The notes beneath the pieces were generated by a model. That model did no database searches, had not been told where the DNA came from, and worked only from the letters and a program-made list of their open reading frames with translations. From the NCBI GenBank assembly GCA_965202585.1, contig OZ241826.1, forward strand, positions 38,316,001 to 38,380,000: 64,000 nt of DNA, given 5' to 3'. The position numbers were made by a program, and so were the translations under genes. Below, piece after piece: positions 18,801 through 63,756 of the stretch. This DNA comes from Thalia democratica. Its lineage: Eukaryota. Numbering within the stretch: the first letter of the stretch is position 1; each line of letters opens with the position of its first letter.

Positions 18801-21800
18801 TAAAAAAAAGTGACTAATGCCTGTTTTATAAATGTCTAGCAAGTACTTAATGAATAGAAAGACCACTTTTTTTTCTATTATTCACGGGTTAGAACAGTAC
18901 TTTATGGATATTACCAATAAAAAATAAAGGGTATTTTTGTAAAAATGTTTAGGTGTAAGAGTAAAATGATACGATTTAAGCTACGTTAGAAAATAAAAAA
19001 GGCATTTATCAAAAAAAAAAACGTTCTTAAAAACTTTTTTATACTCCTATCTATAATTACTTATAGATTTAGATAATATTAAAAAAATAATTGCAAGTAC
19101 AATAAGCAAGATTTTAAAACCAATATATTAACTTGACTTTAGCAGTAAACAATTAGTTGTTTACTCACGTTTTACTGTAATTGTTTTTTCAAAGTCTTCT
19201 CTAGTTCCGTTAGAATCAACTATGTACATCTGAACTTTTTCTTGATCATTCTCAGAGTCAAGTACAGTAATTAGGTTCATAACAGATATATATTGTCCAG
19301 GTGCAATAGTTTCATACGTCACATTGAAACTTTTTCCGTCTGTTAGATTAAGCAATAAAAGCATATAACTTAAAAGTTAAAGTAGTGGTTTTATTACCAC
19401 GGTAAAATTATTTACAAATTTAAAAAATGGGCTATGTTAAATATTTTTTTAAATAAAGTTAGTAGACGATAGTTAAGAAACCACATTTGAGTAATGAATA
19501 AATTTACACCTGCTATTCATAGTTTTAGTACTTTTAGTAGATTATCATAAGCTATATATTAGCCAAAAATTTGTAGCACTTAAAATGTTTAAGTTGAACA
19601 GTCACGAAGAAAGCTTTATACATCACACATTCATCATAAAGTTAAAAAAAATAGTGTGTTGAAAGATTTACTAAAAGTAGTAAAATTTTTAAACTCTTAC
19701 CTACTCTTTGCTTCTACTTTGTCATTTATACAATAGAAATATTACAAACAAAATATTAAATAGACTATGATTCAGTTCTACAACTATAAAACAGTCAACA
19801 TAAATGAAATATAAAAATAAAGAGTCTACTTCTTTACCTGCTCTATTCACACTTCTTGTATTTTCAGTAGATGTTTCAACATTGTATTCAACAGTTTCAC
19901 CATTGAACGACCAACCAACCATGTAAGGTTCCTGACTGTATATGGTTGATTGATAAAAACTACCATAATAACCAACTGACCAATCGTCTGTAGTAACATC
20001 TCCACTTCTATTGAATGTTACTTGAATGTTTGAATCCAACACTGTTAAAACAATAAATTTGTTTAAAGTAGCAATGTTTCAAACTGTGCTGGTGTAAATA
20101 TATCTTGTTAAATTTAAAAGATTTATTTCTCACTTATAAATGAAAAAAAAAATCATAAAAACGATAAATGTTATATTTGTAAACCATAAACAACCAAAGT
20201 AATAATTTTATTTAAAGTTAAGAGAATGATCATAATTAAGTTTTGATATTATAACTTGATAATTATTTTTGCTTTATTTAGTAGTCGACTAAACAGTTTA
20301 GAAACTAAAGCTTTAAGTAAATAAATTAGGTTAAATAAAGAACAAACTAAAAAATTTAAACTCTAATACAATACTATTACAATTTAAAATGAAAGTTTTA
20401 TCAAGTTTTGCTTTTTTAACTGTATAACTTTTAATTTTGTTTTTCAACATAGGAAGTAGCTTAGTATAACAATAAAGTTATTATTTTTTGTTCATCTAGT
20501 AGGTTTTTAATAAAAAAAGATAAACTATCTATGTCATATTTTTTTTATTTTCGGAAGTAAACTCTGCAGACTCTCTTAAAAAACTTTTGAAACCAACACA
20601 GTGTTCAAAGTATTTATTTCAAGATATAAAAAACAAAAATAAAGTTACACTTTTGTTTTATCTTTAAAAACATTAAATATAAACACACCTGTATTGCCAA
20701 TACTATAAAGTCCCACATCGTAACCTGTAAATAAAAAACACTTTTTCACAAAAAAGCTGAAAGTTTAACTCTAAATTTTATTAAGTAATAAAAGTATAGT
20801 ATATTTGAATTAACTAGATAGAAACACTTATTACGTTTAAGATAATTTTAGTAAGAATAGTAAAAGGTGATATGTTTATTGTAAATATATTGCATAACTC
20901 TAATCATTTAAAGCAAACACGACGCTTTAAAACGATGTTTGTTCAAAAGCTATTTGTTTGATTATAACATCTTATATAACACTCAACACAATCGTAAATC
21001 TTTAAAAAATAACTTAAATCCTTTTTACATTAGACTCAAGTTTGTACGACTTCAAAGCACAACAAAAAGTAAATTTTCCATTTAATTTTATATAATAACT
21101 GTTGTCGTTTGAGTTTTCACTTTATGAGTTCGCACTTTAGAGTCAAAGTTTTTTGCTAGAAAAGTAGTTTATTTTTTATAAAAAAAAACTGCAGCCTCGA
21201 AATATATGGAGAAACGCAATTTGTTAGTCGCTGTGAATTTATCTAATGTAGATAAAAAAGAAAGTCAACAAAAATAGTGACCAACGTTAATTTCTTTCAA
21301 GTGTCCTATGTATTCGATAATTTAAGAAGAATAATTTAATGTTGATAAAAACATATTTAACACACCTGAAAACAACATATTTTTAGTTTATGTTCTTACT
21401 ACCACCTCTGATAATTAGTATAACAACTTTATTTAATGTTTTTTGTACTCTCGAAATCAACTTTCAAAGTACTGGTAGTCTAATTTATTATTTTATTGGA
21501 GTTTATTGTGCGAAGATGGACTCGGGAATTAAAACCTGAGTCGCTTAAACATTTTGAAGACTAGAATTTTGCTGAGTTTGCATTTTTAAGATGTGTCCAA
21601 GTAAAAATTTTAGCAGCAGACTGTTGTTATTGCAATAAAAGTTTAGTTTAGCAAAACATATCAAAAAGTTGCCACTTTTTAAATCTAAACTGAACGTTTC
21701 CTTATAAATTATCTAAAACAAGATACTTTCCCCAAATTTGTACTAAGGTTTATTTTTAGTTTAAAAGGTAATAATAATAATAAAAGTGTTTTGTGATATC

Positions 21801-40887: not shown

Positions 40888-40948
40888 ATGATTTTAAGGA
40901 TTTTAAAACAAATATCATTTATAGTTTTACTTCTCCAGTTAGTATCAG
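40888..40948 (+). CDS. Gene B first coding exon, signal peptide [20 protein letters not shown](G)
   Basis: ATG, hydrophobic core, GTAAGC phase-1 donor; ends LLQLVSG like gene A. Confidence 0.85.
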
Positions 40949-43900
40949 GTAAGCTTAAAGTATATTTAGATTCATAATAAAACTAAAAATTTCGTGTACA
41001 ATGTTCGTTCTCAATTTATTAATTTCGAAAAAATAATATAAACAAATTTTATGTAGTATTTCGTAAATAGCTTTACGAAACTTTTAACTAGAAGCTTAAT
41101 TGAAGTTAAGCGACGTAAGCTTTCAACTTTTGTATTTCAAATCTATCTCTAAATTAAGAACAACTACAAAGAAACAAGTTTAAAAACAAGTAAACACTAA
41201 GTTGAAGAAGTTTACTAGTTATAACTTAAACTTTTCAAAACTTCAAGTAAAATTTACTGAAAGTTTCAATACGTTCATTAATCCTAACTACTAATACTTT
41301 TACTTTTAAATTACTTTGCGTTGCACACAAATAATAACAAAGCTTGAAAGGTCAATAGAATAGCTAAATTAAGAATTTAATTAAGCTTGTATTGATAAGT
41401 TTTAAATATATTTTTACTACTTTTTTTAGTCAAAAAAAGAACTTATTCACCTTAGTTTGACATTATAATAATTTTAATTATTAATTCACATTTATTTTTT
41501 TTATATATAAGATGAAGTGTTAAAACGAATAACTTTTAAAGTTATTTAGTTATTGATAATAAAGTTCGTTTATTTATTTTCCTTTCAAGCACTTAAGGTA
41601 AATTTGAACTCACTTTTAAATTTAAATTTGAAATACTTAAAACAAACTTAAAACTTGTAGACAAAATTTTTTGAAGCTTTTCAAAGTGTAGTTCTACACT
41701 TTTTTTCAAAGTTTTAAATTTGATTTTATTCGTGTAGATTAAGATGATGGACTTGAACTTCTTAAATTTATAAAGATGTTAAAATAAATTAATGTATATA
41801 TCAGTTTAAATATTTTAAACTGTTTTACTAAGTTTCTAATAAATTTTGCGCAGGTTACGATGTGGGACTTACCCGTATCGAGGGAAGGGGCAACTCTTGG
41901 GCGGTCGGTTACCAAGGAGACATGCTCGAGGGTTACCTTGACGACCGAAGCACTCTAACATCCATCACGTGGGCGTTGGTTACCGAAGATGGTGACGTCA
42001 CAGAGACGCATTTGGTCAACAGCGACGGCAGCTGCACGTTGCTGGGCAACGACGTGACGTCATTCGAAATCGGTTGTCAGGACGACGGAAGCGGGGGATT
42101 GAGGAGTTTGTTCACCGTAACCAGGGAGTTGGTGGAGTCGGATTTGGAGGTGAAGATTTCTTTCGATAACTCGGGGGATTCCCAGCAAATTCCTACCGTG
42201 GTTTCGCCTATTTTTGTCAAAAGTTAGTTTTTTTAGATTTTATTAAATTTTTACGTAATGGTTTAATTTGTTTTTATAATTTTAATGACGGTTTTTTATA
42301 AATATATTATTATTTTTCCTTGTTTTGTAAATCAATAACTAGTGTGGATTCTTAATTCAGTTTAATTATTTTTTTAAGAAAATATTTGTGACTTAAAACT
42401 AATTATTAGTCATAGAAAAAGTTATAAGATATATCAACGTTAATTTTTAGTTTAAGCATTTATAAACATTTACTCTGAGTTTTCTTTTTTGGGTGATACA
42501 GTTTGTTTAATAACAGTTTATTTATTACTATTTTTCAGTGTGTGAAGCCGACAGACCAGTGGTTGTCGACACGCAAGGATCAGAAATCAAATACCAGACC
42601 CAAGGAAATTTCCAGTGCGTCGGTGCAGGGTACCTGTACAACGAAACCAGCCAGTTGGAAATCGTTGACAGCTCTACTGTTTGCACGATTGACGCTGAAT
42701 GGATGGGACAAGATGACATGATTTGTTATAATGGTCAGTTTGTTGATAATATTATTATAAGTTAATCAAATAAATTTAGAATTTTTTTTTCCAGTATAAT
42801 AAATAGTCAGTACTTGCTTGTGAAAATTGTTATACTTTTATGAGAATGATAATGTAAAAGCAGTATTTTAAAAAGAAATCGCAAATATAAAGAGTAATTA
42901 AGCATATCGTGTTTGATGCTGTATGATTGGATACTGTCACAATGTCGAAACAGTGATAGTATTTTAAGTGTAAGCCAAGATGTTATTTTATAGAAACTTT
43001 GATAATTTTAAGACGAAATCCATGAAGTTTAACTTTTTTTTTAATTTGAAACAGTTCTTAAAGTTTGACGTATTCTAATGTATTTTTATAGCATCTTTTT
43101 AAATATGCTATAAATTAAATACAATAATTTGTTTTTATACACTTCAACCGGTGCTTTCATTAGGAATAATTTTTTTTTTAGTTAAAACCAACAGTCTACG
43201 TTGTTTAAAAAATCTAAAAAACATTATTTATTACAAAATATCAATAAAGCTTTTAGATAACTTTCTAAACTTATACACATCTATTTAGTATAACAAAAGA
43301 CTTAAGCGATAAAACTTTTTATCGAAAAAATAGTAAACTGCAAATGTAATACTACTATTAATCCGTCGTAATCTTTTTATTACTAAAATCCTACTAAGAA
43401 TTTGAAAACGTGTTTATATATTACTTTTGTATCACAGAACCAAAGAACGTGTCATTGTCGGGAGATTTGGAAATAACCGAAGGTACAGACCTGTATTTGA
43501 GATGCAGATATTTTACTCAGGACAGCAACCCTGCCACTAACATTATTTTTTATGTTGATGACAAAGTTTATGAGGAGATTGATTTGACGCAAAACAGAAC
43601 GGTTTGTAGTGGTTGAAGTTTGTGTGTAGTTTAACTACACAACTGTTTCAAATACTTTAAATTATCTTAATAGTTACAAAATATGTTTGTTTTACAATAA
43701 ACATTTTTCGTTAATTAATAAACTAACATTGTAATACATTTCAAATTGTTTACAATAATCATTTTAAAGTGTCTATTTAACTTATAAATCTTATCTAAAC
43801 TTTAATGCAAACTGATAATACCAAACAGTAATTCTAAGTTAAAAAGAAAAAGTGTTTAAATCTTATTAACCAAACAACTGACAATTATCAAACAACATCA

Positions 43901-46900
43901 AAACAGGAAGCGGTATTAAGAATGGGAGTTGATGAGATCACTGATAAAATGACAGTACAGTGTAAAGCTGAAAATTTTATAAATGCTGGTGTAGATGACC
44001 ACGGTGGATTCTCACCTATTGAAACTATTAGAATATGTTAGTCAGCTGTTTAAGTAAATAAAATCGTTTATTCATTATTTTATTGTTCTGATAAAGAAAT
44101 TTCCTTTTCACGTAACAGCTGTATGAGTAACATTAGTTACAAAAAATTATCAAAAACTTAACAACTTTTTTGATATACTATTTTATCATTGTACTCTTGA
44201 TAAATCAATGATGATCGTATTTTAAAAAACTTAACAAAAACTTCAAGTAACCATTTATTACGTCAGTTCTTAAACACGATAATTTTTAAAATGTATATAT
44301 GATACAGTTATTGAACCCTCAAAAATACAAAAGGCTACAATGATTTAGTAAAGCGTAATGTTATAACAGGCTCATTATATACTACATTACAAATAAAAGT
44401 CTAATAAAGTAAAATAAATAACACAAACAGACCCAGATTCTTGTTCATCTAGTCCATGCGATGCAAATGCTATTTGTAGTGATGGCGAAAATGGACCTGT
44501 TTGTGAATGTTTGCCCCAATTTGCAGGAGATGGAACTACTTGCACTGGTTTGTATCAGAAATAAAATGATATTAATTTTCTATTTTTATTAAGTTTATTT
44601 TAAGACTGTTTTTCTTTATTAACCAGCAACGCATACTAGCTTATTTATAAGGTGTAAGTAAAACTTGAAAAACAAATGTAACAAACATAACTGTTAAGAA
44701 TAAGTTTGAAGAGTTGAAATATGCATTGCTCAGTTAAGATTACCTATTTAGTTTTTTTTTTGTTACAACTAAAGGTTTGTTAAACTAAAACTGAGTTTAA
44801 AAAGAAGTAGACTGAACAGTAATCAACGAACATAAAGTATACAAACAATCAATTTACGTAGAGAACTTACAATTCACACTTGTTTTTGCAACAACGATAT
44901 TAGATTTTTTAAAAGTTATCTAGCAATATTCCCAATCAGAAATCCAATCAACGATGACAGCATCATTCGAGCGTAGCAATGACGTCACGGGTGACGATTG
45001 GGCGTGGGGGTACGTGGGGGTGATGTACGCGGCAACCATCAATTCAACCGAGCCCTTCTCGTTGTTATGGGAGTTCGGCGGGTTTCAGTTTGGTTACGAT
45101 GTCGACGAGGACGGAAAATTCGAAATAAGTCAGGTATGGAATAATGGCTGTTTGTAAAAGTCTTTGAGTTTTAAATGTTATGTGTTTTTACAATTAAAAA
45201 ATTGTTTAACGCATTCAAATATTTGTTAATTTATTTTTTAATTGTTGTCTAATTAACAACATATCGACCTCATTTAGTCATTTCTAAATTTTCACAAATT
45301 TACACGGCTAGGCTGAACTTACAAAGCTGTCAGTAAACTAAACGGTTACAAATTAAAATCTTCGTATAACACATCTAATTTTCAACTTCTAGGCAAGCAC
45401 ATACCTTGAAAGCTGTGGTCATACAATTATTATTTTTTACCTTTCACAGGAAACAACACGGTTGGTGAGCGATGTTTCCGCATCTTTTGGCAGGATCGGT
45501 GATGGAATATACTTATCCCAGATCAACGTAAAAGGCTCGGGAACCACGCTGGGATACGGGTTGGATGACACTAACGATGGTGGAATGGTGAAATTCAAAA
45601 CTGTATCTAAACTTATGAGCGAGAGGGAGATTGAGTTTGAGAGGACAATTTCCGTGAAAAGTTTTTATTTTTAAAATATGGCTATACATGTTCTTATAAA
45701 TCTTAAAAGATGTATATATGTTTTGTAAAGTGTATGTCAAACTAGGCCAATAAACGTTTTCAGTGAGTTTATTATTTTACTGCTTGCTTTGAAATTTTGA
45801 AATACAGTATGTTAACAAATAGATGATTTTGTAACAGAAAATAAAAAGTTCAGCATAAAAAATGTCTATCTAGTTAATAAGTCATAAAAAATTTGGAGTA
45901 AGGTACATAAGCATAATACAAATAAAGTCACAACACAAAAAAAAAAGTTTCAGAGACTGTTTCAATTAGCAGTTAACGATAAAATTCTTAAAATTTAACA
46001 AAAGCTAAGAATAGCTTTTATAACTAATATAAGATTATATAATTATAATTTACACAAGTATAAGTACAAAAACAACTTTTATAAAAGCTAAACACGGAAA
46101 CTAATGCCACATGTTTTTCACAGACTGTTCTTTTCCGCTGAGAGGCGACTTCAACGTCACATCTTACGATGACGTCATATACAACTCGAAGGGGGTGATC
46201 ACGTGCGCAAATAATCAAGGGGTGCAGTTTCCGAACGGGACCACAACTGATAAGTTTGACACAGTTTGCCAGGCAAACGCGCTGTGGAGCGACTTTGACG
46301 GCGTTGGTTGCGTGCCAGGTAAGTGGAAAGTTTTATAACTATTTTTAATATTGATTTTTTTGTTTGTATATTTTGAATTTTTTAATTTTTTAGAACTTTA
46401 TTTCAGTTATCTCAAACCCTTGCTTTGTGCTCCTTTAGTTTTAAATTAGTGATTTTTATTTCAACTATAGGTTAATCAGCTGCTTATTTAATTAGAAACA
46501 TTTATTTTCTTTTCAAATTTTGTTATATAATCTCACAAACTTATAACCGTTTTTATTGTTTCAGTAAATATACTAAACACAGTTTATGAAGGTAATTAAG
46601 AAGTTCAGTTTTATAAATTCAAATAAAATGTTTATATTCTATTTATTCATATAGTAAACGCGTTAAAAATATTGAACTGTATTGAAATGAATAGATGAAG
46701 ACGAGTGCGCTAAAGCTATAAAACCTTGTGATACAAACGCCCAATGTACAAACTTGCCTGGAACTTTCACTTGTGAATGTAATCCTGGTTATTCTGGTGA
46801 TGGATTGTCTTGTACTTGTGAGTTTCAATATATATATTTTGTTTTTAAAAAGTGTTTATAACCAATGACTTTCTGAAAAAAAACTTACATGATATTTCTA

Positions 46901-49900
46901 AGTAAGGTATAATAAGTACTATACATAGAAAAAAATAATATATTTATTTATATATGTGTGTCATCTTTATGTTTTGTGTGAAACTAGTTAACCACTTTTT
47001 ATTCTACAAACCTTACTCGAAAATAAAGACAAATATCTAATATAGTTATTAAGTGCTAAATTTATACTTACTTATTACGTCACAGTGCTCGTGACGCAGC
47101 TCGAAGTCACGTTCCAACGAAGCGTGCCTGGTAACCAGCAGGACTGGGCATACGGTTACCAGGGAGAGCTCTACCAGGCGGTGATAACCTTGGGTGACCC
47201 CGCAGAAACATTCTCATTTGGATGGCAGTTTAAAGGAGAAAGCATCGATTTCAATGTTGGTGATTCCCCTAATAATGCCCAAAGAGGATACGAGAATTAC
47301 TACGCCACTTTTGAGACTTTGAGTTCAGGTACTTATGCCAAACAACTATTTATCAGTTTTTGTTTTGCATAATGACAGTAATATTTTTAATGTTTCGTAG
47401 ACAAACTTGTTTAAAAAGTAATTTTATCAAAAATAAAGAGCAACTCAAGCTACTTAAACTTGTAGTCAAATATGAAGCATTATCTTATACATTAATCAAC
47501 TTAATTTGTATACCTTCAAATTTTAATTTTTATGTTTTTACTTCCAGGATCTATCAGGAGTTCAATGAAGCTACTAAGACAATTGAGTGATTCAGACAGC
47601 GGAGAAAAAGTTAAATTTTTTGCAAAATCAGATTATATCAATACCGACCAACAAGATTTTACTAAAACAATCACAGTCAAAAGTAAATAATTATATTTAA
47701 ATATTAAAATTTATGCCATCTATATGCGTAAACAACTTTGGTTTATTACTTTGTCTATGATTAACTATTTTGTATAGCTCTTTAGGTGTTCTTTTTTTTT
47801 AAGAGTTTTAATATTTCCTTGTGCTTACATTTGATAATCGACAATTTCCAACTTGTATAACAAAAATTTTTGCTATTAGTTTTCTCAATATACCTTCAAA
47901 TAGTTTTAAATAGTATTTTAAATATTATAAAACTCCGCATAAAGGCAGTTTTCAACACTAACACCTCTAAATGAATTTAACTTGTTAAACATGTTTTTAG
48001 TTAGTTTAGATAGTTTCACTATTTTTCTTATTGTTTGTTCGTACGTAAACGAAAACAACAGAGTGCGCCACCACTGGTAACCCATCTGTCACACCTATTA
48101 TCGATGACGTCATATACCAGACCGCGGGATTTTACAGTTGCCAAGGCGACGACTACCTGTCGCTAGACGACGGAAGCCCGGTGGAAGTTATTCAAACCAC
48201 ATGCACTGCCGATGGTACTTGGGAGAATGAAGGGGTTTACACCTGCAGTACTGGTTTGTTTCATTTTGACTTATATGTTTTATTTATGTTAGTAGTTAAT
48301 GTGTTATTACAAATTGTCAAGTTTCTTGAGATTAACGCAGGAGTCAGCAAAATGCAGCCCAATAAATAAAAATTCTTCAACGTGTATTTTAAACCTAATT
48401 TTGATGACAATGTTGAGTTTGATTAAACGTGATAACTTTACACATACTGACTGTGTGTACTACTATACTGTGACTGCATGATTTACAGTGAATAAACCTA
48501 AATATTTTTCTACATGAAAACCAAAAACGTTTTATTTGCTTAATTCTAGTTTATCAGCGCTTACGACAATAGTATTAATTTTGGATAAAGTAACGTAAAA
48601 AACAGAAGTAAAAAACACTTTCCTACCAAAAATAGTATACTTTATGACGTAGACGATTTAAATTTTAGTAATTGTTTATATTTAGACCAAGTTTTCCTAA
48701 TGTAAACGACATTGCCCCTCAACTTCGATAATGGCTACCAAGGGGCAATGAAATATAAGGGAAATAAACAATCAAGTAGTAAAGGGGAAATAACTATAAA
48801 AATATTTTTGAGCTTTTTCAACACGCATATAAATAAATGTAGTAGATTTAAACAGGTTTTAATCATAATACCGATAAACAGATGTAAATGAATGCGATAC
48901 AAATCCTTGTGGAACGAATGCTGAGTGCATAAATACATTGGGAAGTTTTATTTGCCAGTGTGAAATTGGTTATTCTGGAGATCCTTTTACTGACTGCAGT
49001 GAAAGTTTGTTTTAGTTTGAATTTAAGTCTAAAAAACAAAAGGGTAGCTGCAGTAGTTAACTTAAACTTAAGAAATATGCATTTTATTGATCTTAAACTC
49101 TCCCTCCCTCGTTAATTTTATTTTACAAATATCCATCGTTATAAAAATTAAAATGTCATTAAAATGTTAAATACTATTTTCTAACACGTCTTCACGTGAA
49201 AAAACATTGAAGTTTTTAAAAAATTGTTTTTTCAACAGTGTTGGACTCCAACATTCAAGTAATATTCGATAGAAGTGGAGATAGTACTACTGACGATTGG
49301 TCAACTGGTTATTACGGTAGTTTTTATCAATCAACCATTTACAGTCAGGAACCTTACATGGTGAGATGGTCGTTTAATGGTGAAACTGTTGAATACAATG
49401 TTGAAACATCTACTGAAAATACAAAAAAGGCTGACAGAGCAGGTAAAAGATTTAAACTTTATTGTTTTACTTTTGATAAATTTTCTACATTGACTGTAAC
49501 ACAACAACTGGTATTTATTATTATTTGCATGATCAATGTCTTTACTCATTAAGTTGGTATGTTTCAAACAGATGACCAATTTTCTAGGTAAGTATTTGAA
49601 GGAGTAAAATCTTTATATTGATAATTTATATAAAATTAGGTGAAACAAGTTTTTACGCGACTTATGAGACTCTTGCTCCTGGTCAGTTCAGATCTGTGAT
49701 GAACATAATTAGCAGTCTCAACTCTACAAATGACCAGCAGAAAGTTCAGTTCTACATCATACCTGTTTATCCGAGTGGAAAAAGGCAGGACTTTGAAAGA
49801 ACAATCACTGTTAAACGTTAGTAGAAGTTTTGACAACTACATACGTTCAATATTATTACTTTTGTTTAGATAGTTATGTGTGAATATATAAGCTTGAAAA

Positions 49901-52900
49901 CGTATAAAAGTAATAGTTTAAATCTGTAATTTCAACTTTTGTACTGATGTTACAAAACTAGAGCCTTAACGTTCAGCTTAACATAATAAAAATCAAGTTG
50001 GTTTAGTACAATTCATGAAATATAGAAAATTCTAAGTTCTTGTACATTTTGTATTTTGTTGTTTAATCTAATCTTTATCTACATATATGTGCTTACGTTA
50101 GTAGAACTACTAAAAGCAATAATAAAAAAAATTATCTTTGTTGTAAAATCTTTACAGAATGCTCCACATCGCCAACTAGTGACACAACTGTCCAATCAAC
50201 CGACCCCACCTACTTGCAACCCGGAGTTCTTACTTGCAACGACCCACTAGTAGTACAGCTACCCAATGGAGATCTTGTGGAAACGTTTGATACAGTTTGT
50301 GGTGCAGATGCTAAGTGGGTGGATTTGGACACTATAACTTGCGAAACAGGTATAAAATTTGGTACTTGTTTTTGTTTAAATAAATTTTACATTACTTCAA
50401 AGAGTGTCTTACTTTGAACTTAAAATTAAGCCCTAAAAGTATCTAAAAATTACTACAAATCTGATATACTTTTCGGTTATTTGTGACACCTTAAAATCAT
50501 TACTATTATTATTCTTTTTATGTTAGGTAATCACTTATGATACATCTTTTTTTTTTTTTGGTTTAACAACACAAATAATACAATACATACAATAATAGAT
50601 GTTGATGAATGTGCTTCAAGTCCTTGCGATACAAACGCCCAATGTACTGACTTACCCGGAACTTTTAATTGTGAATGTAATGTTGGATATACTGGTGATG
50701 GAACTACTTGTACTAGTAAGTTAAAAATAGCTAGAAACAAAAACATATAAAAAACTCATACTGTTTTTTTTTTTAGAAAAAAATAATTTTGAAACATTTT
50801 GTTATAGTTTTGGTTCCACGTTGTTAGATACAATTACCATCATAGTAAAGATAATGAGAAAGTTCTAACGTTTCATCTATTTCAGCTAACTATTAATAGC
50901 TATCGGTGGTCGTTTAACCTGTGTGTTTAAATCATAATTTGTTTTGTTAACTTTTACTTATTTTGATAGTATTGGAATCGAAACTGGACATCGTGTTCGG
51001 ACGCAGCGAGGGTTCCCATGACGACGACTGGACCCAAGGTTACCAAGGAAACTTCTACGGGGCGGAAATATTTGCCAACGGGGAAACTTACTCCGCCACG
51101 TGGAAGTTCGACGGTCAGGAGGAGAGTATCCGAATCGGGGATTCCCCTAGTTCGAGATCAACAGGCAACTTCTACGTGACGTTTGAGAAGACACCAAGGG
51201 GTAGTTACGAGACGACGATGAAGTTGCTAAGGAAACTGGTTGCTGGGGACGAGGGTAAGAAAGTGGAATTCTTCACTGTATCAGATTACATTGGCAACGA
51301 GAGACAAGACTTTTCTGCGACTATTTCTATTACAAGTGGGTTTTGTTTTGTAGTATATTATTATTTTTTTAACAACAAATTACTGTCTATTCTAAATAGC
51401 TCTTATTGTTTTGAATTTTATTTCTGTTACCTGTGAACCATCTTAAAACAAACTAAAAAATTCATACTAAAGTAAAAAGCTCTATGAAACTAAAAGTCTA
51501 AAGTCATATATTTACCTTGGTAATTTTCCTTGTTTATAAGTTTACTTAGTTTTTGCTTTTTTAACTAGCTTTGTTTGTTAAAATCTAGTTTAGTATATAA
51601 GATAACTTTATACTGAATAGTTACCGTTTTACAACAGCATGCTCATCTAATGGCCTGGTTTCACCTATCACTGAAAACGTTGATTTCTCTGCACAAGGTC
51701 TTTATTTCTGTCCACAAGGACAGTACTTGTCGTTGAAAGACGGAAGCGAAGTTGGTGAATACGCAACTGTTTGTACGGCTGATGGTACTTGGCAAAATGA
51801 AGACGATTATATTTGCAGTACAGGTGTGTTGAGTAATTTTGCGCTTTAACTTTAAGCTTATGCTTTTTAAATACTGCTGATCATATTACTTTTATTATTC
51901 AATAAAGAAAAATAACTGAATTTTATTTAGACCAGCTAATTGCAAAAAGTTAAAAAAATATTGAACTGAATATTTTTCTTTATCTTCTTTCTAAAATTTA
52001 AAACACATATTTGTTTTTAGTGGTCTTTATGCTAAAACAGTTTAAATTATAAACATTCAATGATGACTTGTTAATACAAAGTAAAATAACAACAGACACA
52101 AATGAATGCGATTCAAACCCCTGTGGAACAAATGCAGTTTGCTTCAACACTTTAGGAAGTTTTATTTGCCAGTGTAGTCCTGGATATTCTGGAGATCCGC
52201 TTGTAGACTGTAGTGAAGGTTTTTAAACATATTTATCTAAGTTCCGCCTTTTTTTAGACAAAAAACAAAATTTTTTATCTAGTTTTCCCTATGGATTTCA
52301 TAACAAAGTAAAAGATTTTATGTACGTAGTTGTGTTTTAGAAACTTAAAATGAATTTTTTAAATCTATTAAAATAAAACTTAAACATAGTGGAATTTGTA
52401 AAACGTATCTTGTTGTTTTTTTTTATCTAACACTACGTTATACGTTCTCCAGTGTTGGATTCGAACATTCGAGTCGACTTCAACCGAAACACTGGTAACA
52501 GAGACAGTGACGACTGGGCGGTAGGGTTCACAGGTGGCTTGTACGAAGCTTCCATACTGTCTACAGAACCGTTCACTGTGGGTTGGACGTTTGACGGCAA
52601 AACCGTTGAATACAGTGTTGACATGTCAGCGTTGATGGTTAAGGAGGGAGAAATAGTAAAGCAGAACAGGTTGAGTCATTGTTGGCTGATAAACTCGTTG
52701 CTGGTTTTAAGTAAACTAGTGTAGCTGTTTTTAGTTATGTCGGTTAAATATGAATTGAATATTATTTACTAGTTTAAAATCAATGGATATAGTTACTGAC
52801 ACAAAAATAAGTGTTTATACTTACTACCAGCTTTAAAATGTCTACCACCGAATCTAACAACAGATGAAACACTTGTTAACATAAAACTAAAACCTGATTA

Positions 52901-55900
52901 CTTTAATTTAGTTGATTAATTAAAACGAACAAAATTAACAACAGAGCGGGTGACACGGATTTCTATGCTACTTTTGAAAGACTAGCTGCAGGTCAACTCA
53001 GGTCTGTAATGAAGGTGATTACACCATTTGATATGAGTGACGATCAGAAAAAAGTTGAGTTTTATTTGAACCCTGCCTATCCTTCGGGAACCCCACAGAA
53101 CTTCGACAGAACCATCACTGTTAAAGGTTGGCATAAAATTATTAGTGTATTAGTACGTTAGTGCAGTACAGTTCTTTAGAATTTAAAATCTAACATATTC
53201 ACTAAGATTAATTTGTTTTTTGATTATGGAATATACGAAGGGTTGTGCTTAGTTTTTTGTTTTTGTGTTCATATAACTAAATCAATTACCGTTTTAATAA
53301 AAACTAGCTAACTACAATTAATATTTCTCGCAGAGTGCAGCACATCAGGTGGTCTTGTAGTAACAAACGAACCGATATACAACAATGAAGGTGATTTCAG
53401 TTGCGGTGAAGACGTATTAACTTACAAGAATGGAACGGTGGCTGGTGATGTGTCGACTGTTTGCAGTGCTGATGGTGTTTGGGTGGGAGTCGATGACTTA
53501 CAGTGTATCAAAGGTATAATTGATGTGTTGTTATAAACCGTTTACCTAAGTAGTCAAATGTTTTGCAACATCATACTACTGTTTAAATAGAATGCTAAAA
53601 ATAGGCTGTGCAAAACTCTATATTTAAATCGATACATACAATAAAAATACTTTCTTAGATGTTCACGTATTTTTAGAACATAGTATTACTAGCTTCTAGT
53701 TATTTAAAAGGTCTTTTTTATGAAATTTAAAACAAGATAATTTACAGAAGCACCGTCAATAATTTCATTATTTGAATACAAAGCTTAAAAAGCTGCAGTT
53801 TTAATTAAAAAATAGTTTTCCACATCTCCACATTATTAAAAAATATATTTTTAGATGTAGACGAATGCACAACAGACAAACCTTGTGATCCAAATGCACA
53901 ATGTATGAACACTCCCGGAAGTTTTACTTGTACATGTAATGATAAATACACTGGAGATGGTTTCACCTGCACGGGTATACTTTACTTTTCTTATTTCAAT
54001 ACATCGAGTTTAACTGTAAATGCTTTTAGAACTTTTAATAAGATTTTAGTAAGAGTATGTCTTAGTAAAAAAATGAAAGTTACCTTAGACTATGCTTTTT
54101 CTTCAAAGAAAAAAAACTTTCATACTGATTTGATTGTTAATTTTTGTGTGACAACAGCTCTGTATTGTTTGTTTTCAATCAGAGTTTTTTTTTCTAGAAC
54201 TGGTCTCAACCATCCAAGTTGATCTTCACCGCGTCGTCGGTAACCAAGACAACGACTGGGCCATTGGTTACCAGGGAGATTTCTACGAGGCAACTATCAC
54301 TAGTGAAGACGAACCGATGACTTTGGGCTGGTCGTTCAAGGGCGAGACCATAGAAACGAACGTAGTTGCCATGAACAGCAGAAAATACGAAAATTTTTAC
54401 GTCACTTTTGATACGAAAAATGACGTCATTGTAACTAGGATGGTCCTGCTGCAACCCCTAATGGAAAGTGACAGTGGGGAAAAAGTGGGATTCTACACGG
54501 TTTCAGGGTACCAAATTGATAATCCGAGACAGGATTTTGAAAACACGATCACTGTTAAGTGTAAGTTAGGCATAGAGTTAGAATAGTAATATTAGAAATT
54601 AAAATTTTAATTTAACTTATTTAATCTTTGTTGTAAGTAATAAAGCTGTTAAATGGAGCATATAAGTCCAATTCAATATGATATTTAAGTGCTAAATCAA
54701 TAATGACTCTTGAAATATTGCAGTTAACAATTACACATCTTTTTCGAAACTTCTTTATTTTTTTTAAACACAAGGCTCGACACTACTAGACTTAGAGAAA
54801 TTTTAACTAAAAATAGACCCACTTAAAAGAATTTGGAATATATTATTTTATTCATAAACATTTATTCTGATAAAACCTTACAAGAAATGTACATTTCTAT
54901 TTAGTTAATTTAATACCCGAAGACTATTTTTAGTTGCTCAGTTTTAATAATTAAGTAAACATTTGTATCATTGTATATTTTATAAATAAACAACAGCATG
55001 CTCATCCGACGGTTTGGTTTCTCCTTTGATGGACGTTGATTACAACTCACTTGGACTTTACTTCTGTCCACAAGGTCAATACTTATCGTATAAGAATGGT
55101 AGTGAAGCAAATGCGTACCAAACTGTTTGTACGGCTGATGGTAAATGGGAAGACGAAGACGACTATATTTGCAGTACAGGTATTTTTTAAGTACATAAAA
55201 CTATATATTTAATTAAAAAATGTTAAATAATATGAGCATTTATTAAGTTGTGATTCTGATCAGTTTTTGACATTTACTATTTAGTTTTCACTAACCTTGG
55301 CTTATAAGAAAATGGTAAACGTCGTATTGTTTATGAGTTAAGATCTTCCAAAAAGTATTTTTTATTTTAATTATACAAAAGCAGTAGCAACAAGTAGTTG
55401 TTATCTTAAAAATTAGAAAAATATATATAAACATTCTAAATTGTAACTCAAAAACTTGTAACTTGATAATGCTATCTAAGCTTTGTTTTAGTATTCTAAA
55501 CTACCAAAAATCCTGTTACCAATTAACAGATGCAAATGAATGCGATTCAAACCCCTGTGGAACAAATGCAGATTGTTTCAACACTTTAGGAAGTTTTATT
55601 TGCCAATGTAGTCCTGGATATTCTGGAGATCCGCTTGTAGACTGTAGTGAAAGTTTGTTCGTTTTATATTTAATATAAAATTGATTATATTTCAATCTAA
55701 TCAGTAATACAGTTCTGTGATGCTCAAACTGTATGTATTATTACCATAACATGACAATAAACGATTTAAAAACCATAAATGTGCACATAAAACTAAAAGA
55801 TAAAGTTGGTGTTAATTATTGACTCACCTTAAACTTATGCAGTTTTTAAAAACTTTTTTTATTTACAGTATTGGATTCAAACATCCAAGTTAACTTTGAT

Positions 55901-58900
55901 AGAAGCACTGATGGAAACGCAGATGATTGGGCAACAAGTTTCACTGGGGGTTTGTACGAAGCTGAAATAACAACTACTGAACCATTTACTGTTGGCTGGA
56001 CTTTTAAGGTAAAGTTATCACAAATCACTAAATAACAAAATATACATGTGATAATGTTTACTTGTGTTTCTTAAGGAAAGTTTTGTAAAGCTATTATAAA
56101 TGTAAGTGTATGCATTTCAAAACAAGAAAAAAACAAGATATAAGTTTAACTGACAGTCACATCGAGCCGTTTACTGTGGCTGAACATTTAAGGCGAAACT
56201 TTCGTAATCCACCAAAAACAAAACATGCTTCTTTACTTTATAATTGTTAAGCAATATTGTGCATATCTAACATACATACAAGTAAATTCGTTACTGATAT
56301 TTCCACTTTATGTTTTTTAAGGAAGAAAACGTGCAATACACAGTTGAACTACCCTCACCGGCTGCAAGACAAAATCGAGCCGGGGACACTAAATTTTATG
56401 CGACATTTGAAACACTCTCACCTGGAGTGTACAGGTCTGTAATGAACGTTATAGCAGGACTCAATTTGACTGATGATGGGGAAAAAGTTGAGTTTTATCT
56501 TATACCCGCATATCCGTCCGGGGATCGACAAGATTTTCCAAGAACAATTACAATGAAAGGTAGCTGCTTTTTATTGACTAAGGTTGTTAAAAAAACAATG
56601 AATTTAAGAAAAAAAACTCTTTTGTTGAAGTTAAAAAGACACCTAGTTTAATATTTTGTATAAAATATAACTATTTGTTGTGGTTATACTTTTTTTTTAT
56701 GTAGTTATAACACTTTAATAAACTAAAAACTACACTTTTTTTTAAACTTTATAAATATTTTTAATTAAACAATGTTAAACAAATTTAAATATTTTCTTTA
56801 AAGTGTTAAACTTTAATGCAAGTTTGATATACACTAAAACTAATCAGAATGCTTCGATGTACAAAACCACGTAACAACCACAACCAATCAAAACACGTAC
56901 GGTAGCGAAGGGGATTTTATTTGCGACAACGGCGGGGTTCTGACAAACGAAGCGGGAAGCCCCTACGTCGATCCAAGTACAGTTTGCAGGGCTGACGGTG
57001 TGTGGGAGAATGAAGATACAATCAAGTGTCCTGATGGTTTGTTTTATTTAAGTGCTTTTTTCAACGGGTTTTAAAAATAAACCTACTTTTAAAGCGTTCT
57101 TACTACGCTTTTATGGTTATTCTGATATTTAATCTCAAAGTTTAATTACATATTTTTTCTAACATTTTGAACACGTCTTAAAACATTATAATCCACTTAA
57201 TTTTTTTTAAATACTCATAAGTGAAATACATATGTTACATACAGAATATCGATATATTTAATGACTTAAAATAATTTTGTATGTCTTTGTGAAACTAAAA
57301 TATTTTGTTGTAGGTTGCAGTTTTTCATTTAGTTAAGTTCTGATTTTTGTTTATCTAAAAAAGTGTTGTGTTATCCTCCCATTATCACTTTAAACTATTA
57401 TAATATTAAAATGCAATTTATTTGTATTCAATCTCAGAATTGCCCAATTTAAGTTTTTCTATTTTATAATTACGTATATATACTGCTCGTCATTTAAAAC
57501 TACTTAAGATTTTATTTTATAATGTTTTATAATTTAGATAGTTGTTTAAAAATTTCATGATGGTGTGTGCAAATAGTAATGATTCTTAATAAAGTTGAAA
57601 CTATTTTTGTAGGTAAAAAAGCTTAAATTTATAGCTTTTTTACTGTATAACTAGTTTATAAGTAATAATCCAAATTTTAGATTTTGTTTTGTTGACTTGT
57701 ATGAAATTTAGTATAAACATTTAGTGAGTATTTTTCTTGTTTTTTTAAACACAACTGCCAAACTTTGCTTGAAATGTTTTGATTTTATAATTTTTGATTT
57801 TATATGCTGACGTTAAACGACATAAAAAAATGTTTGTTACGAAATCTCGATAGCTTGAACTTATGCTTGTAAACCCTTATTAACAGATAGTTGCCATGTA
57901 TTGTACTTAGATGTATTTTTATATAAAGGGTAATGACTTCTTTTTCATTGCTTTTGCATAGTTTTTTAAAACCTATTAAAAATAACCTTTTTACGTGTTA
58001 TTTTTAAAATAACCGTAAAACTTGATGTTATCTCATATTGTATATAAAGTTAGTTACTTAAATTAACTCTAACACACGTAAATTTATTACAACTTAACAA
58101 TAAATTTGAGACAATTTTAAAAAACTTTATGCTTAAGTATTTAAAATAACCGTAAAAAAACTTAACAAACGGTTAAGTTTATAAACTTGAATGTTTATAA
58201 GAATAAACTGAAGTAAAATTATTTTTTTAACAATTAGACTTCTTTATTGCACGAAAAATAATCAAAAAAGTATTTAGAATTAAACAAAAACTTAAGTGAA
58301 AAATTGACTAATTGTTATGTCATTCAACATACTTTGTCATAGTAGTTATGTTTGAAACCATCAATTTAACTAGCTTGTTTTTTGTTTACTGAGATTATCT
58401 AAAACTTAAACTTCAAGAATAACACTGTCATTGCTCACTTTATAGGTCAAATAGTATTTGAACTGTCAATTGTAACGTCGTAAAGTAGTAACAAAAAAGC
58501 GTAAAAAAGCTAAATTAAGTGGGTTAACTGAGTAATAAAAACACTTTTAGTAGGTCAGATGTTTAAAAACGTTATATTTGATGGTTTGCAATAGTATAAA
58601 AGCACTTTAAAATTATTTTGTAACTTTTCAAAACTTTGTTTAAGTTATAAGATTGTTAATAGAACTAAAACCCTGAATAAAAAACGTTGTATGTTTGAAA
58701 AAAATTAATGATTTTCAATATTGTTTGACTTTAGCAAATAAATCAGCTGGTTAAGGTCGAAATTTATATTTAATTGCTCGAAATTTGGTGAAAAATGCAC
58801 GTATACTGAACGCTTGCACACAAGTAAATAAATAAACAAACTATTGAACTTTATTATAGCGAATGTTTGCTTTATATTAAAATTAGCGTATGCGTCTGAT

Positions 58901-61900
58901 TAAAAACCTTCTGTTTAAACAAAAATGTTTGACTTGTGAAATTTTGCATGCTTGAATAGCAAACATTGTCGAAAGTAATTTAAAGTAAACTCGATTTTGT
59001 TTAATTTTTGTTTTAATAAAAATTTCGTCAGAGTTGTTTTGTTTGAAAGGCTGCGTTAACCTTGAAACTTGAAAGTATTTTCAATCAATAAAGTTTAATT
59101 GTGGTCTTAAAAACTTAGTTTATTGCTAATTGATATTGAGTTCGACTGTCCAAACAAAAAAACTTGAAAACAACGGAGTTTTGAAGCTTAGAATATAAAA
59201 TAAAGTTGAAAAGTTATAATCCTCCAACTAGACATAAATGTTGCCTTTTGATCTATCCAGCAATTGATTTGAAAATAAAATTGAAACTAACAGTTAAACT
59301 AGTTGAAGAAAAAGTAAAAAGAAAAAACAAATTATAATCATATTTTGGTATGTATTTTGTAAAAAAAACTTTATTCTAATTGTATTACTAACCTACAAAA
59401 TAAAATAAACTACCACATATTTTATTTTATACATACAATGTAAATCATTCTTATGTCTAATAAAACAATTAGTATTGTATGCACAATAAACTGTATGAAA
59501 ATATAAACCGCTTTTGAAAAAATTTACAGGATCTAAAAAAAAAAACCCACTTGTTTTAACTTTATTATGAATTGCAAATAAATAGTTTGAATACAGAAAA
59601 CTTTACTTTAAATAAAAACCCAAAGTTTATTTTTGGTTAATTTTTATCATACAAAACATTTGATACTGTATTCGTTACAAATTTAATTGTTTATTTGTTT
59701 TTATTAAACACTTAAACTGTTTATTTAATCTTGATAGGTGTGTATACAGTCAACAAAAACAAACAACTAAATTACAAAAAATGAAGTATACTTCAATTGA
59801 ATTTAGTTTTTAGATAACTGTAACATAAGTTTTTGTTGTTTCTATTTGCTTTTAAATTGAGTTTTTGGAAACTTAAGCATCACGTTTGACAAAAAATTCT
59901 AAAAACAATTAAATTCTTTATTTAACAAAATTAAATAAAACAATTAAATTCTTTATTTAACAAAATTAAATAAAAACAATTAAAATAATTATAAACTTTT
60001 TTAAACTAATGTTTAAAACAGGCTCTTTACTAACGTAACAAACTGTTCAAACCGTCACATTTTTAAACACTTACCACCTGAATGCTTAAACCACATTATC
60101 ATCTTAGGCGATTTCTCGAGCACGATAAGTGTCGATGACGTCATAGGAACGGGATACGTGGGCGACCTGTACGTAGCTGAAATCACAAATGACGTCACAA
60201 TGATAGTGTGGACGTACAACCAGCAGAGCGCTCAAAGTTATAACGTTGAAAGTGACGGTAGTTGCACTCTGCAGACGGATGGTAGCGACAATTTTGAAGT
60301 TAGTTTATATTTTACTTACTATAAAGGTGGTACTTGTCTATTGAAAAGAAGTTCAGATTAATTCACTACATTGTATAAAATACTTGTTTATCTAATACAG
60401 TTGCTATTAAGCAAGTTTTAAGAAACAATGATAAACTTCATTTGTTATGTTCTCTACCTTAGTTATATAAATATTTTTTTATTTCTAATTTTTTTATTGC
60501 TATACAAGTACATAAAATAAAAGACTATTTGTTTTATAAGAAGTCAAACGTAGTTTATAACATATCATTTTCAAATAAGGTCTCGTGTGAGAAAAATGGA
60601 GGAAATCTTATTAGCACTTTTACTCTCAAAACACCCCTTGTTCCTATGGAATCTTCTTCTGTTGCTTTTAGCACCAACGTCGACCCTATTTTGTATGAGG
60701 CTAACTTCGATGTTAAAGGTTATAAAATTTCATGTTTCTAACATAACCTTATTACAGCCTATACTATTTAAACTACTGTATATATAATGTTGAAATTTTT
60801 TTGTTCATATCAATGAGTTTAACTTAGCAATATTTTCTGACGTCCTTTTATACTAGTTAAGGTATTGAATAATTCTTTGTAAACTAGTTAATCAATTAAA
60901 TTGTAATAAGCTAATTCAATAATGTATTTCTTATAAAATACTTTTTTTTTCAACACTTATGGAAATTTCGTAAACATTTTATTTTAAACATTTGTAGTTT
61001 CTAATACAACTTATTTATGTTACAGAATGTTCCGTCGAGGCGCCATTACTAGTAGAAAGTACAAACAACGACTATGAAATCTCAGGAACTTTCGGGTGCC
61101 AATCAGGTTACTACTTATACCTGAAAGACGGAAGCCAACCTTCTGGTACACAAACTACATGCTTGATAACTGCTGAGTGGGAAAACTATGATCAATACGC
61201 TTGCTATCAACGTTTGTTTTGATGACTTTTTTAAATAGTTCAGGAAACAACTTAACTATAAACTATCTTTTTAAGGCTGAATTCTTTATATTCTTAAATA
61301 AGTTGTTTTAATTGTTTCTGTTACGATCAGATGCTTTAGTTTGTAACAACTTTGTACTAGTTAAGACAAACAACTCAAACATGAATTAACCTTAGAAAGA
61401 ACATTTTTAAATTTAAATTTATAAAGTTTTTGTTGCACATTTGTCTTAAAACTTATTAACAAAAAATTATTAGATCAATCTATTAAAACATCACAGTCTG
61501 TAAGAGGAATGAGATAGTTGCTTAGTTATACGGTTCAGAATTTTATTTCGTCATCATTTTTGTAATTGAAATACAGTAAACTAATCAAACGTGCTCCACT
61601 GTGGTTTAAAAGTACAAAACCAATTGATTAACTTCATATTTTATCCGAACAGCACCGACTCCGGTAACAATTGTCGGTGACACTTCAATGTCGGAAGCTG
61701 AAACGCTTCAGTTCGAATGTTTGTATTTTACTCAGGATTATGACGTAACAAACATCATATTTTATATAGATGACGTAGTTGTTCAGCAGGGTGAAGTTAG
61801 TTTAATTAAATGATAAAAACCTCGAACTACATTGTAAAATTAAATTTAATACACTAAACAAAATTTCAACAAGCTAAGATTCAATTCAATAAAAAAAGCA

Positions 61901-63606
61901 ATTGAATATTAGTTGCGTAAATAATACTAATAAGCATTAGGTCTTTTTACATTAGCTGTTGTTGTCATATACCATATTTTTGTTTTATAGAAAGACATTA
62001 TTAAGCTGTGAAATACAGTTACTTAAACTTATTTTAAAAGGTTGTCGTTCAAAAACTTTAATAAGTTCTTACTATATTTATATGCATCAAATTACTCAAT
62101 ATAAAGTTAAACAGTATACTAACTTTTATAATATCTAAGACTTTAAAACTTAAAATACGTAAATTGAAGAAACCTATTTTATCTTAGGATACAACTTTCA
62201 CAAAAACAGCAGAAGTAAGTGACAATGGGAAATATGTTCGTTGTAAAGCAGAAAATATGGTAAATGAAGGGGTTGACGATAGAGGTGGATTTTCACTACA
62301 ACTCATGCTTAAAATTGGTGAGAAAGCCTCTAAAAAATATTAAGCTACAATTTTTTTTCAAATGAATTGTATTACGTTTTGTAATGCCTTTTGCTTTACT
62401 TATTTGAAAACAAACTTATTTTTTACAAATAAAGTTATACTTCAACAATTTATACAAAAAGTTTATTTACTAAGTTGTGATAAAATAATCAAATTAGTCA
62501 AATTACCCTTTAACCTATAATATTTATTACTTTTAGATGAAAACGAGTGTTTGAGGGCAAATACCTGTGGTGAAAATGCAGATTGTGAAAACTTGGAGGA
62601 AATAGATGGAAGTTTCAGTTGTTCTTGTAAATTCGGTTATGAAGGTGAACCTTATCAAGATGGCTGCGTTGGTTAGCTGTTTTATTGATTTAAACCATTT
62701 ATTCTGACAAACATGTAATTTATTTTATCGTGATTCAAATAAAACATATTGATGTTTTTACAAAAACTTTGGACGTATAATAACTAAGTAATAAAAAAAT
62801 ACTTTACACAGCAATCCAATCAAACATTGAGGTTACATTCGAAAGATCTGACGGTTCACAGGGGAATGACTGGACAACTGGTTACTATGGTAGCATGTAC
62901 CAGGCCGAAATAACTGCTAACAACGAACCATACACTATTGGGTGGACCTACAATGGCCAGGCAGTTATATACAATATAGATATGCAAAGTTATGATGTAA
63001 ACTTCAGAGCTACTAATGGTTTGTTTTATGCTCAGATAGTTTTTTTTTTGTAAAAATAACAGCAATGGGTTCACTGTTTAGAGCTTTTATGTAGTTAAAA
63101 TGGTTTTAAAATTGGCTTTTTTTCTTATATATACAAACTTTAAAAGTTCTAAAGTTAAAAAAACAAAAGCTTAAACAGGAATAGCAATATTCATGTCATA
63201 CCTTAGTTATCAATAGAGTTACATATTTTTTTTTGTCAATAAACTGTTATAAATTATTTAGTAACGACTCTTAAAAAAAAATAAGTTGTTTTCAAATTTA
63301 AGAAAAAACTATTAATTTAACAAATATATTTCAAAAAGACTTAGCCAGTAAAATGCAATTAGAGATTATAAAAGTGTTTATGTTTAAAATAAACCAAACA
63401 CTTTCACAAAATAGACATTTTATAAACAGAAACAGTGGGTTGGTACGTGACTTATTCTTCTACTTCCAGCAACACTCTGATGACGTCACTCCAATTGATC
63501 GAACCTTTGAATTATGACGATAATGATGTCACTGTTGACTTTTACGTCATTGCTGCTTACCAGACCGGAACGAGGCAGGATTTTGGCGCCACACTGAAAA
63601 TCACGA
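40888..63606 (+). CDS. Gene B (3' end outside window): paralog of gene A, SP-X-sushi-Ig-EGF-[X-sushi-EGF]x6-X-sushi-X-sushi-Ig-EGF-X-..., >2,350 aa
   Basis: Exons: SP 40888-40948; X0 41854-42222; S 42539-42733; Ig 43438-43601+43907-44036; E 44431-44547; X 44940-45133+45450-45660; S 46124-46318; E 46695-46817; X 47086-47328+47548-47682; S 48062-48253; E 48882-49004; X1 49239-49442+49640-49816; S 50158-50349; E 50599-50715; X5 50970-51335; S 51638-51823; E 52096-52218; X3 52453-52669+52945-53126; S 53334-53513; E 53855-53974; X4 54198-54560; S 54997-55179; E 55530-55652; X6 55869-56008+56322-56559; S 56848-57036; X7 60108-60298+60580-60718; S 61026-61211; Ig 61653-61795+62188-62317; E 62537-62671; X8 62812-63018+63430-63606. 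All are GT..AG and frame-consistent; several exon lengths equal their gene A counterparts (204, 366, 186, 143, 130, 207, 177 nt). Confidence 0.88.
58818..58950 (+). promoter_or_regulatory. Conserved non-coding element in the ~3.1-kb intron of gene B
   Basis: Paralogous to 8630-8760; contains forkhead-like TAAACAAA / TGTTTAAAC words. Confidence 0.55.
59902..59985. repeat. 35-bp tandem repeat, ~2.4 copies
   Basis: AAAACAATTAAATTCTTTATTTAACAAAATTAAAT at 59902 and 59937, plus a partial third copy. Confidence 0.8.
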
Positions 63607-63756
63607 GTTTGTTTATTGCCTTTATTTGTCATAATTTCTGTGCTACATTTTTAAAGGAAGGTTTAGAAAAACAAGCAGACATCTTATAAAGAAACAAATA
63701 CAGTTTTTTTATACTATACGTATAAGCAATTTTGGACTACAAAATTTTCTCTAGAT

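Follow-up and report, generated by a model that had tools for sequence, protein, structure and literature searches.

The 64,000-nucleotide window analysed here (Thalia democratica, assembly GCA_965202585.1, contig OZ241826.1, positions 38,316,001 to 38,380,000 of the forward strand) encodes 18 copies of a domain of ~122 aa, here called X, in two genes, gene A on the reverse strand and gene B on the forward strand. X is a new sequence family of known (here predicted) fold, and is lineage-restricted, as far as seen to pelagic tunicates. Judging from structure prediction, it is probably a sequence-cryptic immunoglobulin (Ig)-like β-sandwich with V-type strand topology and without the canonical B-F disulfide. 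We focused on the copy encoded at 50970..51335 (+), the copy B4 of gene B.

A repeated domain on a phase 1-1 exon

The focus copy lies on one 366-nt exon of phase 1-1, with 122 codons, none of them for Cys; translation of 50969-51337 (+) gives an open frame of 123 aa. Contigs from two marine metatranscriptome runs span the exons of this region and skip the introns. They are 90-99% identical to the window, and therefore derive from the same population as the sequenced source or a closely related one. GT..AG joints were identified near the focus exon at 50347>50597, 50715>50970, 52216>52451, 53124>53332 and 53511>53853, and past 51335 the letters of the contigs match the next (Sushi) exon. Thus, the joint 50715>50970 and the continuation at 51335 establish 50970-51335 as exactly one exon. 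Where the exons of the split copies B3 and B5 meet, the RNA contigs have 9-16 additional letters (49425-49638 and 52661-52940, respectively), due either to a shifted splice site in the related population or to length variation in the C''-D loop. The window is AT-rich (21-33% GC), contains no N letters and has only short open frames, as expected for eukaryotic genes with introns.

A hidden Markov model (HMM) of four copies was searched against the six-frame translation of the window. It matched the focus copy at E 3.7e-67, with full-length copies at 1e-51 to 1e-68 and intron-split half-copies at 1e-7 to 1e-20. Gene A encodes eight copies (seven without Cys and one of a second type, X0) and gene B encodes ten (eight and two, respectively). 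An eleventh gene B copy occurs just past the end of the window (L007:801-1487). Within a gene, the copies are 25-55% identical to each other. A first-pass annotation of this DNA, made from the letters alone, had reported the same count and the same borders for the focus copy, and the latter coincide exactly with the exon borders in the RNA. The consensus that it derived agrees with our alignments A1 and A2. As it had noted, Cys is absent from the focus copy and most other copies, and a different Cys pair is present in the X0 subtype (GSCT...EIGC in X0 of gene B, 41859-42224).

Sequence searches

The domain had been described as unrecognised, and it found no significant match in Pfam. Five copies gave no match at E<=1, and 33 family members gave nothing consistent at E<=10 and no match to V-set, I-set, ig, Ig_2 or Ig_3. 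The family profile built from the copies, together with phmmer and hmmsearch, found no real match and no Ig chain among PDB sequences; matches to a collagen adhesin (E 0.027) and a bromodomain protein (E 0.08) were set aside as chance. A search of the ESM Atlas by sequence features gave no usable match, and no described tunicate or thaliacean protein combining Sushi, EGF and a novel domain turned up in the literature.

A profile dominated by the subtype without Cys was searched exhaustively against 1.84 billion protein representatives (E<=0.001) and returned 47 matches only. Some are short open reading frames (ORFs), and all six that were looked up come from ENA marine metagenomes. These are true homologues, split into a subtype without Cys and an X0 subtype. 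The remaining matches are long proteins aligned weakly and at profile positions 29-85 only, several times each. All six of those looked up are PKD/Ig-type repeat proteins; four are named, and those are bacterial. We identified no named tunicate protein among the matches looked up.

Predicted fold and conserved core

The AlphaFold2 model of the focus copy, made with alignment A1, has a predicted local distance difference test (pLDDT) score of 87.5 and a predicted template-modelling (pTM) score of 0.82. Strands are predicted at residues 7-12, 20-22, 28-35, 41-47, 50-56, 61-64, 68-74, 80-86, 98-105 and 113-122, a pattern that reads as A, A', B, C, C', C'', D, E, F and G of a two-sheet Greek-key β-sandwich. 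Template-modelling scores in Foldseek are ~0.5-0.6, and the input alignments for AlphaFold2 have 24-25 rows, many of them fragments and many from the same locus.

The residues W21, G24, G27, Y30, W45 and L90 show conservation of 90% or more across the 33 family members. W45 is located in predicted strand C (41-47), as is its putative counterpart Trp41 in Ig domains. Between predicted strands E and F we identified L90-x-x-x-D94-x-G96, followed by K-K-V99-E-F101, which is shifted by one residue relative to the Y-x-C of Ig domains and has no Tyr. Copies of the X0 type keep only the L and the D of this motif. The Cys pair of X0 aligns to the C''/D region, with F72 of the focus copy at the position of the second Cys (alignment A2). 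Since the focus copy lacks Cys altogether and the X0 pair is in C''/D, the canonical B-F disulfide is absent from both subtypes. The core is probably held instead by Y30 (strand B), W45 (strand C) and V99 and F101 (strand F), as placed in the model.

The first-pass annotation had interpreted X as an Ig fold without its disulfide, derived from the V-set or I-set. The model supports this reading of the fold, being an Ig-like sandwich and not one of another kind, and the central Trp on which the reading drew is the conserved W45. The predicted topology is V-type; there is no sequence match to V-set or I-set. L90-x-x-x-D94-x-G96 recalls the proposed Ig-like 'L...D.G' motif, with V99-x-F101 off register and no Tyr corner.

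Genes A and B

Paralogous and arranged head to head, genes A and B encode type I membrane proteins of ~2,700 aa. The modules between the X exons are four-Cys Sushi/CCP-like and calcium-binding-type EGF. The Sushi/CCP-like modules match Pfam Sushi at E 0.14 to 2.4e-5, one of them above the cut-off, and the Sushi part of a second AlphaFold2 model has pLDDT < 50; the fold of this module thus rests only on the weak-to-moderate Pfam matches. For the EGF modules, a sister exon matches EGF_3 at E 3.2e-7. The order in gene B is a candidate signal peptide, X0-Sushi-Ig-EGF, seven X-Sushi-EGF units and X0'-Sushi-Ig-EGF-X-Sushi-X-Sushi, followed by the transmembrane segment and tail. The transmembrane exon of gene B lies outside the window (L007:2721-2885). 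Gene A mirrors this order in a shorter form, with an equivalent transmembrane exon at its end. Each protein has a single transmembrane segment and a tail of ~15 residues. A second signal peptide that would split gene B was looked for at 57100-60130, and none was found. In gene A there is an additional B4-like copy, and the X0-Sushi-Ig-EGF-X1-X2 head is missing.

Equivalent copies of the two genes are 64-95% identical, with differences between the halves of a domain. For B3/A3 the N-terminal half is 92% identical and the C-terminal half 64%, and for B9/A9 the values are 70% and 95%. This unevenness suggests gene conversion or unequal exchange. On either side of the focus exon, the introns share ~80% identity with the corresponding ones of its paralogue. 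The ratio of nonsynonymous to synonymous substitution (dN/dS) between paralogous X exons is 0.08-0.29, and both genes are therefore under purifying selection.

Other family members and the host

A profile search of the genome (assembly total 802 Mb) identified at least 73 exon-level matches, 46 of them outside the locus of genes A and B. A third X-Sushi-EGF gene without Cys in X is present at C6:32025001-32035000 (L010), with a single-exon copy (L010:4144-4488) that shares 63% identity with the focus copy. On C8, at 4428000-4610000 (L009, L018, L020), about 11 genes are arranged in tandem, ~20 kb apart. These encode X0-(Sushi+X0)-(Sushi+X0)-Sushi, three Ig_2 domains and a transmembrane segment. 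Exons for a tyrosine phosphatase occur 8-10 kb downstream of each gene, on the same strand, and the unit in L020 has an intact WPDHGVP loop and the VHC-SAGVGRTG catalytic motif. From its gene order, the array looks like an expanded family of receptor-type protein tyrosine phosphatases (PTPs) with V-like heads. C9 and C1 (at 102.3 Mb) carry similar genes. X0 is therefore the widespread form in the genome, and X without Cys is probably a branch derived from it.

The Tara Oceans plankton metagenomes (PRJEB4352), as well as other marine metagenomes and metatranscriptomes, contain near-identical X exons and COX1 fragments. In a search with COX1, the top matches (86-91% identity) were marine metatranscriptome and metagenome sequences, with no named tunicate among them. 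In mitochondrial COX1, AGA/AGG occur at invariant Gly positions (GGFGN, FFGHPEVY) and TGA encodes Trp. This codon use is that of the ascidian mitochondrial code and, together with the occurrences in plankton, identifies the host as a planktonic tunicate. COX1 also occurs as nuclear copies of mitochondrial DNA (numts) with many stops at C4:56842736-56945724 (L005, L006) and on C757; the intact mitochondrial copy is on C1833.

Origin and relationships of the X domain

As predicted, X shares with V-set (PF07686) and I-set (PF07679) domains the two-sheet Greek-key arrangement, a length of ~120 residues and the A', C' and C'' strands. The Trp in predicted strand C is also common to both, as are the phase 1-1 exon and the occurrence in ectodomains of type I membrane proteins beside EGF, Sushi and canonical Ig domains, and the 'L...D.G' in the E-F turn recalls the Ig motif. 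Unlike these families, X has neither the B-F disulfide nor the Tyr corner and gives no Pfam or profile match. Its own features are the signature W-A-x-G-Y-x-G-x-F-Y-x-A in A'-B and the Cys pair of X0 in C''/D.

We propose that X is a self-contained module on a phase 1-1 exon, and that this exon was multiplied together with two others, a divergent Sushi/CCP and a calcium-binding EGF exon, to give the two head-to-head paralogous genes for giant membrane proteins. The X domains without Cys would be a branch derived from an older X0 type with its local Cys pair in C''/D. Each X could act both as a rigid spacer and as a binding surface for proteins within a cell-surface filament, perhaps of the order of 100 nm long, that may be used for adhesion or recognition.

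Several points weigh against this interpretation. No sequence method ties X to V-set, I-set or another Ig family, and hhalign of the X family with the canonical Ig_2 domains of the same genome gives a probability of 1%. The fold assignment comes from AlphaFold2 with shallow alignments, and the residues of the model equivalent to Cys23, Trp41 and Cys104 are putative. Gene B as a single transcript is a predicted gene model, and the RNA does not show 57100-60100 joined. The role in adhesion or recognition is drawn from architecture alone.

Another tunicate system is close to X in several respects. In Botryllus, proteins of the Fester family (FF) combine Ig-like domains (V-type in 15/38) with Sushi, and FcoR consists of a V-type Ig-like domain, Sushi, two Ig-like domains, a transmembrane segment and a tail; both are encoded in multigene clusters, and the first Ig domain spans 1 or 3 exons (PMC12582321). 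X and X0 might thus belong to the same family as these N-terminal V-type domains, as the pelagic branch of a tunicate-wide family. The Botryllus domains too are recognised by AlphaFold and Foldseek only, adjoin Sushi and occur in type I membrane proteins. Like them, the X0 genes form tandem clusters, and their V-type N-terminal domain, seen by structure prediction only, is followed by Sushi: gene B starts with a candidate signal peptide, X0, Sushi and Ig, and the C8 genes follow X0 with two Sushi+X0 units, Sushi and three Ig domains before the transmembrane segment. However, FF proteins have three transmembrane helices and FcoR has ITIM/hemITAM tails, and neither feature is found in genes A and B (single transmembrane segment, 15-residue tails) or in the C8 genes (single transmembrane segment, then a PTP domain). 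In addition, a giant protein carries up to 11 copies of X along with EGF modules, and elsewhere the domain heads putative receptor tyrosine phosphatases. The exhaustive search, with a profile mostly of the subtype without Cys, gave no named tunicate protein among the matches looked up, and the likeness to FF and FcoR is one of architecture and predicted fold, as published. We regard membership in the Botryllus family as possible but doubtful. The broader scenario, in which X0 and X, as a family of pelagic tunicates, would share ancestry with the cryptic V-type domains of the Botryllus allorecognition receptors Fester and FcoR, heads of V-like Ig plus Sushi would be ancestral to tunicates, and such heads would have been recruited both into giant adhesion filaments and into the 11-gene receptor tyrosine phosphatase array for self/non-self or immune-type recognition, is unlikely as a whole.

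X could also be a distant, enlarged relative of PKD or of bacterial Ig-like families, and not a V/I-set member of the immunoglobulin superfamily. The bacterial PKD/Ig_3 repeat proteins, with 7-10 repeats each and summed E to 7.7e-25, are the only matches besides ORFs in the exhaustive search. They have in common with X the pattern 'F.A.....EPFT..W.FG', which recalls the WDFGDG of PKD, and PKD domains (PF00801, PF18911) are Ig-like sandwiches with a 'W-x-F-G' turn after strand C. Against this, hhalign with a bacterial PKD repeat gives a probability of 13% over 46 columns, no X copy matches the PKD Pfam models at E<=10, and X is ~35 residues longer than PKD (~85 residues, without C''), with C' and C'' strands. 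We treat the matches to bacterial PKD/Ig_3 repeats, confined to positions 29-85, as a resemblance at the level of a motif and not as family membership, and consider a relationship to PKD or bacterial Ig-like families very unlikely. A last reading is that AlphaFold, given a shallow alignment, produced the Ig-like model as an artefact and that X has some other all-β fold. The few and fragmentary alignment rows and the Foldseek scores of only ~0.5-0.6 lend it something, and we consider it extremely improbable.

V-type Ig-like domains in surface receptors of tunicates, the sister group of vertebrates, bear on the origin of the building block of antigen receptors. The X family escapes both Pfam and the exhaustive search of 1.84 billion proteins, although it accounts for about half of two large membrane proteins that are expressed. 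A cnidarian parallel is Alr of Hydractinia, in which Ig domains without the Cys 'pin' were found by structure prediction only (PMC9546547). Like X, the Alr domains lack the Cys-Trp-Cys 'pin' set, have a V-set-like predicted fold and carry aromatic or hydrophobic residues at the Cys positions. They differ in showing no sequence similarity to X and in that most lack the Trp that is kept in X. HHpred can link many of the Alr domains to V-set. With Hydractinia Alr and Botryllus FF/FcoR as the earlier two, X would be the third such case. A curated X profile would help to annotate the genomes of pelagic tunicates and the Tara Oceans plankton data, where X exons are common.

Other features of the window

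The copies of X and the associated exons are listed in Table 1.

Table 1. Exons of genes A and B in the 64,000-nt window other than the focus exon, with the evidence for each.
Feature	Position	Strand	Evidence
Gene B, candidate signal-peptide exon	40888..40948	+	Hydrophobicity and donor scan; GT donor of phase 1 fits acceptor before 41854; predicted only, without RNA support
Gene B, X0-type copy at N-terminus	41854..42224	+	Cys pair GSCT...EIGC; near-identical metagenome ORF P0010
Gene B, X copy B1, two exons (44945-45088, 45558-45662)	44945..45662	+	HMM
Gene B, X copy B2, two exons (47088-47345, 47547-47684)	47088..47684	+	HMM
Gene B, X copy B3, two exons (49241-49425, 49638-49814)	49241..49818	+	HMM; RNA contig covers both and next Sushi exon
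Gene B, calcium-binding-type EGF exon directly 5' of focus exon, 39 codons	50599..50715	+	RNA joints 50347>50597 (cut +2), 50715>50970
Gene B, four-Cys Sushi/CCP-like exon directly 3' of focus exon	51617..51830	+	Weak Pfam Sushi, E 0.049
Gene B, X copy B5, two exons (52451-52661, 52940-53124)	52451..53124	+	HMM; RNA joints 52216>52451, 53124>53332
Gene B, X copy B6, single exon	54197..54559	+	HMM E 1.6e-51; RNA coverage
Gene B, X copy B7, two exons (55871-56014, 56358-56558)	55871..56558	+	HMM
Gene B, X0' (second X0-type copy), first exon; Ile at W21 position	60107..60304	+	HMM E 5.9e-4; sequence and acceptor site
Gene B, X copy B9, two exons (62817-63029, 63435-63608)	62817..63608	+	HMM
Gene A, X copy A3, two exons (19854-20039, 19167-19334)	19167..20039	-	HMM
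Gene A, X copy A4, single exon	17540..17917	-	HMM E 3.6e-68
Gene A, X copy A5, two exons	15568..16296	-	HMM
Gene A, X copy A6, single exon	13760..14134	-	HMM E 1.7e-62
Gene A, single-exon copy, closest paralogue of focus exon (89% aa identity, dN/dS 0.29)	12476..12841	-	HMM
Gene A, X copy A7, two exons	11038..11625	-	HMM
Gene A, X0'-type copy, divergent	6888..7187	-	Weak HMM matches; sequence
Gene A, X copy A9, two exons (4326-4547, 3619-3792)	3619..4547	-	HMM
Gene A, transmembrane exon and short acidic tail	2580..2741	-	Sequence

Between the two divergent genes, we identified an intron-free ORF of 213 aa at 34460-35101 (-) with a C-terminal RING-H2 finger (zf-RING_2, E 4e-12). A second intergenic ORF, of 130 aa at 27050-27442 (-), resembles a fragment of a LINE-like retrotransposon protein, as judged by eye only.
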